A stretch of 64,000 nt of DNA, taken from Klebsormidium nitens (Eukaryota; Plantae; Klebsormidiophyceae). The stretch spans positions 124,001 through 188,000 of the forward strand of contig DF236988.1 in assembly GCA_000708835.1 (NCBI GenBank). The letters are read 5' to 3'. The position numbers and the translations under genes are program-made. Below, in pieces: positions 3,776 through 50,745 of this stretch (its first letter is position 1; each line of letters starts with the position of its first letter). The notes below the pieces were generated by a model. The model was not told the DNA's origin, searched no databases, and worked only from the letters and a program-made list of their open reading frames with translations.

Positions 3776-4847
3776 CACGTGGCGCACATTGAGCGCCTCC
3801 AAAAGGGGCCCAGATAGTAGGTTGAGGGGCGGCTGACAACTTGGCAGCGTGGTAACATGAGGGTAGTGCTTTCTATGCACAGCAATCGTTTGTCATGTTG
3901 AGCTAGTGACATGATCAGGAATAAAGACAGCTCTCACTGTCTTAAGTGGAGGAGCTCTGTACATATAATACCTAGTATTGGTTTCCGGTGGAAATGATAG
4001 AGGTAGGCCAGCTAGAGGTCGCCCCGGCGTCGCTGGACAAAGTCCGACGACTTTGGATTGCCCCTGTGGGCCCATTAAAGTATGCAGATGCAACATTGCA
4101 GCCAGAGCCCAATCGATCTAGCTGGGATTTAAAGACAGCAGGCAGTTGCTGTCTAGCTAGCCTAAGATTGCAGTGCTATGTGCATTTTAGCTGACGCGTA
4201 TCGATCTCCTCACATGCACCGACACTAAGTCACACGGTCATCTGTGCCAAGCCTGATGCTTTCTTTGGAATGTGCAAGTGCTCACATCAATCTAGCCATG
4301 CCGCCATGCAGGCACGCCAAACGTATTGACACAAATAGGAAGCCATGCGAATGCGCCCGACATGCATACGCTTCAATGAGCGGATCTTGCAAAAGGAGGA
4401 AGCTCTCCGCAACATGCATTCCGTGACCACAGCCCTCTCCTAATCCCAAGACCACGCTTTCCAGGGCTCAGATTCACGGTAAAGAGGGCCACTCAATCAT
4501 TTACAGGGTCTAAATTCAAGAAATGGTCGCTATGACCAAAAAACGTCTAATTTGCAGCCGGAAAGTTTTCCAAACACATACTGCAAGTGCCCCAAAACCC
4601 TTTCCCCCCTCACCCCGTATTCTAATCTTTACCTACCCGTTAGTGGTCTACGTTTGGCAGGTTGTCTACCATGGTTACTGCTCCTACGACTTTGACTAAA
4701 TTCTGATCGTTCCTACAGCACCGATATTACACTGTACTGCTTGCCAAAGAACCAAAGCTCGCTACGACAACGGGTGTAGAAACGTGCGCTACGCATGCAG
4801 GTGTCAATCTACGTAAACCCAACTAAGCGGTCAGAGAGTCGTTCGAA

Positions 4848-47263: not shown

Positions 47264-47812
47264 TCAAAGCTTATGCTCTTTTTGTCGCTGCGGAACAAGA
47301 CGCTCGACAACATACCCTCCGACCAATAGACACATCGTCACCCATGGCAGAACCGCCACAGCCCCCCCCCCCTGCCAGGACGCCCCATGCGGCCACGCCA
47401 AGACACTCCCCAACGGCTGCACGGTGGCCAAAGGCAAGCTCACCACCGCTGTTTTCTTATACAGCTGATATGCAACCCCCCGAAACGCGAGCCGGCCCAT
47501 GGAAACCGCCGTCCTCCATGTGAGCCTTCGGGAAGGTTCTCCTCCCTGCCGCTGCTGCAGCTCTGCCAGGGCCTTTTCTTTGGCGGCCACCTCACGCAAG
47601 AGCTTTGCGCTTTTGGCGAATGTTGCCGGAGTGTTCAGCTGGTCGGCGCGCTTTCGTAGCTGGTGAATGCTGCGGCGGAGCTCTGCCTCTTCGCCGCTGG
47701 AGGGAGAGCCCTGGCAGCGCCTGGTGAAGAGAGCGGCAGAGAGTTCCACGGCGCAGGCGGCCAGAAAGAGCCACAGGGGCAGGAGGGAAGAGGGCGGGCC
47801 GTTTTCGTCCAT
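47264..47812 (-). CDS. GET1: Tail-anchored protein insertase GET1/WRB-like, intronless, 182 aa
   Basis: ATG at 47812. Hydrophobic N-terminal segment, coiled coil EAELRRSIHQLRKRADQLNTPATFAKSAKLLR, VQPLGSVLAWP, and VAVLPW, as in plant GET1. Confidence 0.8.
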   Translation of the reverse strand: MDENGPPSSLLPLWLFLAACAVELSAALFTRRCQGSPSSGEEAELRRSIHQLRKRADQLNTPATFAKSAKLLREVAAKEKALAELQQRQGGEPSRRLTWRTAVSMGRLAFRGVAYQLYKKTAVVSLPLATVQPLGSVLAWPHGASWQGGGAVAVLPWVTMCLLVGGYVVERLVPQRQKEHKL

Positions 47813-48233
47813 CTCCTCCAATTGAATTTCAACTATCTCTAGGCTCTAGGTGTGCCCCTCAGCTGCCGCTGAAGCCAAGTCCAAGCTGTACAGCCTCATG
47901 AACAGCTGGGGCCCAAACGAATTGAATTCGAATGGATATAAGAGCAAAAAATGGTGCATAAGCGACCGTGAGGGCGAACGCGTCGCGGAAACCGCTACTC
48001 AGGCGTCAGGCAACTGGCGTTTTTTTTACCGCACTGTCCGACAGAATATGTACCGGTTTCCAGATAACCTATGCCGTTTCCTTCCCATAGACAGTCCAAT
48101 CGGCATATGTTCTCGGAGATAGACTCAAGTCTCACAATCTTCGCCATGGCCCATTTCCGGAGGCTTGTCCTCCCAGACATTGCTCAGGGCGGCAACCCCG
48201 ATCTCCTGACGGCTTTTAGTAGACCGTATCAGC

Positions 48234-49517
48234 ATGGAGGAGCCAAAAAAGGAGGAGCCTGCCTCTCCTTGTGCCCGGCCTGCGGAGCCGGGTAATACGG
48301 TGCAGAAGATACGGAAGCATATTGACGAGTTCCGGAAGGCGTCCCCAGATGAGCACAAGCAATGATTTAAAAACACGCTAAGCAAGGTGGGTTGTGGGTT
48401 CTGGATTGTGTTGGTGGTACTAAGTCTTTCTATCTATTCTTTGGATGGGGAAAATTTCAACAGGACTCGAACGAAGAGAAGTCATTGATGTGATAGCAGA
48501 GCATACCCTTGACTGCCATCATTGCTACGTTGTGCTTTCGACTAAACACAAGCTACTGTTAGTATCCTAACGCTGGGCTTTTCTACATGCCAATTGAGTT
48601 GCTGGTGAAACTCGCATGGATCAAATCAGAAAGTGATGCGCGCGTTGATCTCAACCATGAGGGATTTGTGGAGTGAGGACCAACTGAGCTTTTCTTTCTG
48701 GTTTGTAGCAGTCATCAGCTATCCTACGCGATAAAGGTGATGAATTTGTGTAGAACTTGGGCAGCGTGCGCTCTCTGCCAGCTGTGCACCATAATTGTTG
48801 CGACGGTCTTGTCAAATCCTTTTCTTTCACAAATCAGATTATTAGTCATTGTCAAACACCTCCCTTTCCGCTACGCTCACTAAGTCTTGAGCGAGTACTT
48901 TTGAACACATCTTTCTGAGTTCCGGAAAAGTGAGTCCTGAGCTCTGAACGAGACTTCAATTGCAGATGTTTGGGTTCCGGAGAAAACCCGCAAAGCCGCC
49001 AGACACGTCACCAGATGCAGCGGGGAGCTTGAGCCCCCAGCCCGTGGAAAGCGTTCTGCGGCTGAGGGTTGAGTACTATGGAGATCCGGACCAAAAGGTG
49101 AATTGACTGCCGCCTTCTCAAGTGTGCACCTCTGGCTGTGGGACTGGCAGTATCAGAGTCTGTTTGAATTGCCTGAATCAATTCGTTGTACCATGTGTGT
49201 TCATACTATTCATCCTAGTATCTGAAAATCGTAAATATCAAGGCCCCTTAGGTCATGTGAAGTACATGAGAAGTGAAGTACTGGATTGAGGGGTAGATCT
49301 GACAGCTCACCGTTTACCAATCAAATGGCGTACTGCACTGCTACTGGAGAAGTCTTCCAACATCCAGCGGTATGTTGCCTTGGATCAATGAGTGCCCATA
49401 GATACGCTAGATCACATGAAAGACGTTCATCACAAGTTGAGTCTCTCCGTGCTGCAACAATTCTGACTCGTTTATTGCCCCACCTCGAAGCTTCCTTCTA
49501 CGTTGCAGTTTGTTTAG
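48234..49517 (+). CDS. Small uncharacterised protein (97 aa) with in-frame TGA at codon 44; candidate selenoprotein
   Basis: Exon 1, 48234-48386: MEEPKKEEPASPCARPAEPGNTVQKIRKHIDEFRKASPDEHKQ[TGA]FKNTLSK, then donor AAG|gtgggt. Exon 2, 48966-49097: MFGFRRKPAKPP...PVESVLRLRVEYYGDPDQK. Probable exon 3 from 49509: FV*. The recalled land-plant family motif (approximately HIDEFxxASxDEHKTCFKxTIQKMFG...VES) continues in frame on both sides of the TGA. Confidence 0.75.
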
Positions 49518-49552
49518 CACTTCGAGCGGAGTCTCAATCGTGCGCACGCCAA

Positions 49553-49617
49553 CAAAGCATTATGAAGGCTATGGCTCAAACTCCAAGCCTGAGCAGCCTA
49601 AGCTGGAAGTAGCTTTG
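49553..49617 (+). promoter_or_regulatory. Putative eukaryotic SECIS element (type II) in 3' UTR
   Basis: Folded by hand. Helix I: CAAAGC(49553-58)/GCUUUG(49612-17). Core: AUGAA(49562-66)/GGAA(49605-08). Helix II: GGCUAUGGCU(49567-76)/AGCCUAAGCU(49595-604) with a 2x2 internal loop. AAA at 49578-80, 11 nt after the core. Mini-helix CUC/GAG closing a 7-nt loop. Confidence 0.65.
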
Positions 49618-50745
49618 GATCTGAGCGTGTGCAAGGGCAGGCCGGCCCGCCACCATTGATCCACCATCGGCTTTGTACATAAAGAGGCAAATTAGATTGA
49701 TATTCCAAACACCCTTTCAAGTTATGTTATTTTACAATCGCTTTGCAAAGCCGATTGTGACAAGGATGATAAGTCATTGGTGACGGTTGTAAATGACAAG
49801 AAAGGCACCAAAGTGGGCACCAGAGCTTCATTGCATGGAGGTTTGGCTGATAAGGTACTCATCGTCAACTGGCTTCAAGCATCGATCAATGGAACGCGTT
49901 GAGTATCTAAAATGAGAGGCGCAAGCGAGAATGATCGTCGTTGAGCCTGCATGACTGCGTCATCTGATATTGTTCAATTGGAATCAATGCTTGGTGCACC
50001 GGCCCTCCATGATGTGTGGGCTGTGTATCATGCAACCAGGCCGTTCCTTAAACCAACATGGCACCGTCGTATGAGCTTAGGCATATAGTTATGTCGCGGG
50101 CAAACAATGTGGAAAAGAAGTCCGACTAGACAGTGCACACATGAGCCTCAGGCTGCAGTACATATGATAGCCAGCTAATGGATCTTCAAACGACGCTTCA
50201 AGCCTGCTGGCAAATATAAAGCAGTACACATGCATGTACTATAGGTGCATGTCTGTTTAACAAAGAGCGAGTCCATGCAGAATACCCACCAGACCTCCGA
50301 CGCGATCAGAGGCATGTCGCCCCATGATGATCCGTCTCGAATCATTGTATGTAGAGAGTTAGAGCGACAAGCGAATCTTCAATATACAAACAAATTAGTG
50401 CTATACTTATCTAGAAAAGTGCATGCAATATAATTGTGTTCGTCAATTTGGCCGGTGTGGTTGGTGCTCATCATCATGTACCGTACCCGTTATATACCGC
50501 ACGTATGGCTGCAAACGATCTTCACCGTATGCCTGCCTGCTGATGTGCGCGCGCTGAAGTGCACTTTGTATACGTTGCGTCTGTGAGTAGAGTCTGATTC
50601 TCGCGCACGCCATCTCAAATATAAGAGTGCCGTCGCGAAATCTAAGATTTTCGCAGACTGGGCTACCGCTGCCGCTCCACTAGTGAGGAAATTGAGACCT
50701 GGAAAGGGTCTGCAGTGCGATCACCCGCGCCAGATTCCCTGAGGC

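Follow-up and report, generated by a model that had tools for sequence, protein, structure and literature searches.

A candidate form 2 SECIS element downstream of an in-frame UGA in Klebsormidium nitens and a probable new family of small green-lineage selenoproteins

We propose that the hairpin at 49553-49617 of the 64,000-nt stretch of Klebsormidium nitens DNA analysed here (the window) is, with high likelihood, a functional form 2 selenocysteine insertion sequence (SECIS) in the 3′ UTR of a three-exon mRNA, and that the UGA at codon 44 of the same mRNA is read as selenocysteine (Sec). In this model the AUGA/GA kink-turn core of the hairpin would bind SBP2, which would bring eEFSec with Sec-tRNA(Sec) to a ribosome standing at the UGA, 200 nt upstream. 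The UGA would be decoded as selenocysteine and translation would run on through exon 2 to the TAG codon of exon 3, the predicted product being a selenoprotein of 97 residues in which Sec is residue 44. A SECIS is expected to lie at least about 50-110 nt downstream of the UGA that it recodes, and the distance of 200 nt agrees with this expectation. Complete Sec machinery has been reported for both Klebsormidiophyceae and Charophyceae (PMC6627142); no tRNA gene is present in the 64-kb window. The initial annotation took the hairpin as support for Sec decoding, and we arrive at the same view from its position in the UTR, its conservation as an island in the closest orthologous locus, the retention of the UGA and the reading frame in seven homologues and the presence of SECIS elements in distant ones, from which we infer Sec insertion itself.

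The structure of the gene is given by RNA contigs from four public runs, belonging to four studies, which hold about half of the sequence words of the region (Table 1). Contigs of all four runs carry two GT..AG joints, linking 48386 to 48966 and 49097 to 49509, and are therefore RNA-derived; contig depth is 100-240 over the exons as against 3-11 over the introns. The gene that carries the hairpin is small, well expressed and made of three exons. Its 5′ UTR is about 75 nt long, and the coding sequence starts at 48234 with the first ATG of the transcript, from where the frame runs for 43 codons to the TGA, for 7 codons to the donor, for 44 codons in exon 2 and ends with TTT GTT TAG, 97 codons in total. 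As the contigs are spliced, the hairpin sits in the 3′ UTR of the mature mRNA, where it starts 35 nt past the TAG and 200 nt past the UGA. The contigs thereby confirm the acceptor at 49509, the TTT GTT TAG that follows it, the 35-nt gap and the distance of about 200 nt from the UGA, all of which had been read from the genomic sequence in the initial annotation, and they place the element inside the mature mRNA, in exon 3, and outside the coding sequence. Low-depth contigs (3-11) also cover both introns in all four runs (48400-48905 and 49068-49536), and presumably represent unspliced pre-mRNA or retained-intron forms. Further down the 3′ UTR, beyond the SECIS, there is a 14-nt inverted repeat (49662-49675 and 49746-49759; 93% complementary, 70 nt apart), where Rfam returns mir-19 at chance level (17.7 bits, E 1.2); the repeat is not clearly conserved in the closest orthologous locus. 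Separate transcripts lie on either side of the gene, at 47600-47880 and 50362-50600.

The hairpin is very probably a eukaryotic SECIS of form 2 (type II), an ordinary but weak example of its class. Every feature first ascribed to it is present in the sequence, namely the AUGAA...GGAA core, the spacing to the AAA, the 26 nt from the AA to the 3′ GA, the apical mini-helix and the 6-bp helix I, and so are the two helix II mismatches entered as a caveat, an A.A and a U.U that stand side by side in mid-helix and make this a weak example of helix II. Helix II of a SECIS typically measures about 9-12 bp, and here it has 10 positions, 8 of them paired. A 3-nt internal loop separates helix I from the AUGA, and the spacing from AUGA to AAA is 12 nt (11 nt when counted from AUGAA), as in the Rfam SECIS_1 consensus. 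The element resembles SECIS form 2 (RF00031; SECISearch3 descriptor) in its AUGA...GA non-Watson-Crick core, in this spacing, in possessing helices I and II and an apical mini-helix, and in its 3′ UTR site downstream of an in-frame UGA. It differs in a score of 18.7 bits against the gathering score of 35, in the mismatches of helix II, in a mini-helix of only 3 bp and in the 3′ side of the core, which is GGAA as against the consensus UGAU. Tandem sheared G.A pairs flanked by helices are common to this element and to the kink-turn RNAs that are bound by L7Ae-family proteins, such as box C/D snoRNAs; the window element differs from the latter in lying in an mRNA 3′ UTR, in the SECIS-specific AAA at a fixed spacing and in having no guide region, and a local Rfam search gave no snoRNA match for it.

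Table 1. Positions of the features of the gene and of the candidate SECIS element (window coordinates).
Feature	Position	Strand	Evidence
Exon 1	about 48159-48386	+	contig starts at 48159-48163 in 4 runs; adapter adjoins 48159 in run X1
In-frame UGA, codon 44, proposed Sec codon	48363-48365	+	TGA at the same codon in 7 of 7 homologues
Intron 1, GT..AG, 579 nt	48387-48965	+	joint in 4 of 4 runs
Exon 2, 44 codons, in the frame of exon 1	48966-49097	+	RNA joints; C-terminal motif SVLRLRVE
Intron 2, GT..AG, 411 nt	49098-49508	+	joint in 4 of 4 runs
Exon 3: TTT GTT TAG, then 3′ UTR	49509-49814	+	contigs end between 49714 and 49894
Stop codon TAG	49515-49517	+	exon 3
Candidate SECIS element	49553-49617	+	SECIS_1 best family locally; conservation island 49553-49620 with L001; sole descriptor match in the window
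Helix I, CAAAGC x GCUUUG	49553-49558 x 49612-49617	+	6 bp, 6 of 6 positions paired
Core AUGA	49562-49565	+	aligned to the RF00031 core
Helix II	49567-49576 x 49595-49604	+	10 positions, 8 paired
Unpaired AAA	49578-49580	+	
Helix III (apical mini-helix), CUC x GAG	49581-49583 x 49591-49593	+	3 bp
3′ GA of the core, inside GGAA	49606-49607	+	aligned to the RF00031 core

The 43-aa piece of the protein that precedes the UGA led to a single protein, P0001, an ORF of 42 aa with 81% identity that comes from a JGI metagenome and was ended by the gene caller at the same TGA. An HMMER profile search with these N-terminal 43 aa only, against 1.84 billion representative proteins, returned five more, four of which end exactly at ..EEHK[KQ]. 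At all seven homologous loci (L001, the locus of P0001, L002 and L004 to L008) a TGA, and never a TAA or TAG, occupies the same codon; EEH[KT]x stands before it, and past it the open frame continues as [LF]K[NR]T[LF]x[KS]. The seven codons past the UGA vary synonymously (Leu TTG or CTC, Lys AAA or AAG, Asn AAC or AAT, Leu CTA, CTG or CTC), and an intron follows the seventh of them in the window, L001, L002, L004 and L008; L005 and L006/L007 are intronless, the latter pair, with 64% GC, coming from marine samples. The members have a C-terminal motif in common, SV[LFV]xL[RKQ]V, which is conserved in L004, L005 and L006, and an upstream Cys (CxRP) is conserved in six of the seven members. Two scans of metagenome contigs with alignments of exon 1 and of exon 2 gave no confirmed relative, and a protein search with exon 2 (exact 5-mer words, length window) gave no match.

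One of these homologues, L008, is BFEA01000043.1 of assembly GCA_003427395.1, an accession that papers on Chara braunii cite. Its annotated gene model, P0002 (152 aa, L008:4001-21392), departs from exon 1 at ..KIRKHVREF, its splicing avoiding the TGA at 4181-4183, where the genomic frame reads ..EFVNASYDEHKQ-TGA-LKNTLNK and then meets a GT donor. This public gene model is probably wrong; the exons further downstream were not located, the intron being largely masked as N. At L002 (2703-2870) the derived frame enters a Leu-rich hydrophobic tail after LFSFRAQPSPSPPP, and the C-terminal motif, as ..RFVVVLPLQV.., is found in the -1 frame just past a C-rich tract; this frame break may stem from an error in the contig or from a small intron that went unrecognised, or it may be a genuine variant. 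The marine loci L006 and L007 are near-identical, except that about 58 nt of the 3′ UTR are duplicated in tandem in L006 (about 880-1010) and single copy in L007.

The SECIS reading is supported because the distant homologues hold SECIS elements of unrelated sequence at the same position. At the homologous site of the window, L001, L002 and L008, SECIS_1 ranks first among the Rfam families, with scores that are all below the gathering score and rise from the window (the weakest) through L001 (21.2 bits, its best local match) and L002 (27.4 bits, E 0.003, about 150 nt past the putative stop) to the element of Chara braunii (31.7 bits, E 2e-4, at 21488-21553 of L008, about 100 nt past the stop of P0002). 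L004 and L005, whose elements are not reported by Rfam SECIS_1, carry AUGA-AA-GA hairpins with mini-helices of 5-8 bp, respectively 150 and 61 nt past their stops. The AUGA and GA of the core are invariant in L001, L002, L004, L005 and L008, and an AA or AAA follows the AUGA by 11-13 nt in six of six elements, that of the window included. When the helix II pairs of the six elements were counted by a script anchored on the core, the helix II sequences were seen to differ among lineages, yet each element pairs at 7-9 of the 10 positions, and a position shows 2-4 standard pair types; when 5′ and 3′ strands from different species are combined, about 5.7 of 10 pair. Since pairing was among the criteria by which the elements of L002, L004, L005 and L008 were chosen, it is their presence and position that count as evidence, and not their pairing. 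A covariance model made from the two Klebsormidium-type elements recovered only that of Chara (15 bits, E 0.69). Downstream of the marine stops no SECIS was found within 1 kb (L007) or 2.1 kb (L006); SECIS prediction often fails in Mamiellophyceae (PMC6627142).

An alternative is that the UGA is passed by ordinary, SECIS-independent read-through with a near-cognate tRNA (Trp, Cys or Arg), and that the conserved hairpin does something else, for example as a kink-turn protein-binding site or as a stability or localisation element. A UGA that is followed by U or C terminates relatively poorly, and U or C follows it in all members (UGA-UUU, UGA-UUG, UGA-CUC). The window hairpin is furthermore a SECIS below threshold, and the L004 region weakly matches a C/D-box snoRNA model (19.4 bits, E 0.31) that shares the kink-turn motif. 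Against this stand the exclusive use of TGA in seven of seven lineages, the AUGA..AA..GA arrangement at SECIS spacing in every homologue with enough 3′ sequence other than L006/L007, the rank of SECIS_1 as best Rfam family in four members, and the full Sec machinery reported for the lineages concerned, and read-through would leave the conserved SECIS-like elements unexplained. We therefore regard simple read-through as improbable, if the least improbable of the alternatives to Sec decoding.

Still less probable, to the point that we reject it, is a bicistronic mRNA in which a first ORF of 43 aa ends at the UGA, a second of 46 aa starts from the ATG of exon 2 and the hairpin has no part in recoding. 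Polycistronic mRNAs with short spacing have been described from green algae (PMC7896298), and the window resembles them in having two short conserved ORFs 21 nt apart, the second with an ATG; indeed exon 2 opens exactly with this ATG in the window and L001, and the residue after the seven post-UGA codons appears as Met in L005 as well. Both ORFs are also under purifying selection, and the differences between the window and L001 pile up at third positions on either side of the UGA (by codon position, 7, 2 and 21 before it, 1, 0 and 2 directly after it and then 5, 4 and 14 in exon 2). The equivalent codon is, however, Leu (CTC or TTG) in L002, L004 and L006/L007, as read from the genomic codons; under the start rule of table 11 a leading TTG comes out of the alignment tool as M, an artefact that gives L004 and L005 an apparent initial Met for a Leu codon. 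Unlike the spacer of the green-algal mRNAs, the seven codons past the UGA are kept as protein, with synonymous changes and always in frame, in seven of seven members, and two independent cistrons would give no reason for the exclusive use of TGA to end the first ORF or for the conserved SECIS-like element. It is the lineages with Leu in place of Met, together with a spacer conserved as though translated and in frame, that speak for a single frame read through the UGA.

Taken alone, the window hairpin is no better than chance. Rfam at gathering thresholds gives no match in the whole 64-kb window, and in a lax search of 501 nt, in which SECIS_1 (RF00031) is the best family, its score on the hairpin has an E-value of 0.72 with 4227 families searched, equivalent to about 2e-4 per kb for the single model; the gathering score of 35 bits is an operational cut-off and no structural feature. 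The covariance-model check called for at the outset is thus answered in part, with SECIS_1 ranking first locally and its score falling short of gathering. The MFE z-score of -0.5 indicates a fold no better than that of shuffled sequence, and the MFE fold differs from the SECIS fold (-17.7 vs -15.6 kcal/mol), the non-canonical core being outside the energy model. A custom descriptor (AUGA, 10-13 nt, AA and a 3′ GA, with no fewer than 8 pairs in helix II and 5 in helix I) finds exactly one site on both strands of the window (128 kb), this hairpin, where dinucleotide shuffles of the window lead one to expect 0.78 +/- 0.86 sites. The chance that such a match lands in the 340-nt UTR, on one strand, is about 0.002, and it is because of this placement and of conservation, and not by itself, that the hairpin is significant.

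The conservation is seen most clearly at L001, which has the same three exons, the identical TTT GTT TAG and the hairpin. A blastn comparison of 43-55 kb of the window with the 10 kb of L001 gives three matches only, which are exon 1, exon 2 and 49553-49620; the UTR that flanks the hairpin aligns on neither side, and the neighbouring sequence shows no conservation at the DNA level. The introns and the remaining UTR have passed beyond blastn detection, but 78% identity persists in the hairpin, along precisely its own length. In an ungapped alignment of the two sequences 89.5% of the proposed structure is paired, and no more than 58% when the register is slid. One helix II pair has changed from U-A to C-G, which is compensatory, one helix I pair from A-U to G.U and one mismatch to U-A; the apical loop varies and its stem is kept, and helix II of L001 is paired at 8 of 10 positions. 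Covariation, likewise proposed as a check, is accordingly visible in the compensatory pair and the A-U to G.U change, and its statistics are weak with so few sequences, the shuffle control, with only two close Klebsormidium-type sequences, giving an uninformative 365/500. That the hairpin is a chance resemblance, its conservation in the UTR reflecting only the closeness of the two species, would fit the number of descriptor matches per shuffled window (about 0.8), the z-score and the score below gathering, but the divergence of the introns and the rest of the UTR around a conserved hairpin, and the independent SECIS_1 matches at the same position in the distant L002 and L008, make it most unlikely.

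As Sec decoding remains the preferred reading, the window gene probably marks a new selenoprotein family, outside the described families with which it was compared. Neither Pfam, for both halves of the protein and seven family members, nor the ESM Atlas, for both halves, gave a usable match, and a PDB sequence search gave chance-level matches only. Published surveys list 42 algal selenoprotein families (PMC7539508) and report two selenoproteins for Klebsormidium nitens (PMC6627142). In sequence the protein matches none of the Ostreococcus hypothetical selenoproteins 1-3 (PMC2375036 supplement), the motifs of the family do not occur in the supplements of PMC2375036 and PMC7539508, and we found no description of the protein family in the literature. 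No Cys homologue was found in the HMMER search with the N-terminal 43 aa or with a five-member alignment of the post-UGA part (30-96 aa, exact 5-mer words). On balance, and with moderate confidence, we consider this a previously undescribed family of small proteins (about 90-100 aa) of the green lineage, Sec-only and with no detectable Cys form anywhere, land plants included, which would range over streptophyte algae (Klebsormidium and Chara braunii) and GC-rich marine picoeukaryotes. Its proposed signature is CxRP...HxxEF..A..EEHKx-U-LKNTL...SVLxLxV, and it would have escaped notice because gene callers either end the ORF at the UGA or splice it out.

The protein itself is probably a small redox protein with its Sec in a conserved helix-like segment, ..HxxEFxxAxxEEHKxULKNTL... 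It is comparable to SELENOK, SELENOS, SELENOW and the Ostreococcus hypotheticals 1-3 in being short, with a single UGA-encoded Sec and a SECIS in the 3′ UTR, and the Ostreococcus proteins (PUB-, PITH- and membrane-type; PMC2375036 supplement) likewise come from green-lineage algae. The predicted Sec lies mid-protein (44 of 97, in EEHKxULKNTL), whereas that of SELENOK and SELENOS is near the C-terminus and the Ostreococcus hypotheticals end in GCUG and PCUGR; SELENOW has a CxxU thioredoxin-like motif, and the Sec of the window protein is in no such motif. The Klebsormidium nitens protein has no transmembrane segment.

Recoding of a UGA by a SECIS in the 3′ UTR is a textbook mechanism, yet here the element would validate a gene that is invisible to homology-based surveys. 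If the model holds, the two selenoprotein genes given in the literature for Klebsormidium nitens are too low a count, and families specific to a lineage escape surveys based on homology. Land plants have their closest relatives among the streptophyte algae and, to our knowledge, have lost selenocysteine entirely; a Sec-only family with no Cys counterpart would bear on the losses at the transition from streptophyte algae to land plants. The case also suggests that weak SECIS matches below threshold can be rescued by comparative placement, the family recurring in Chara braunii and in several environmental algae.
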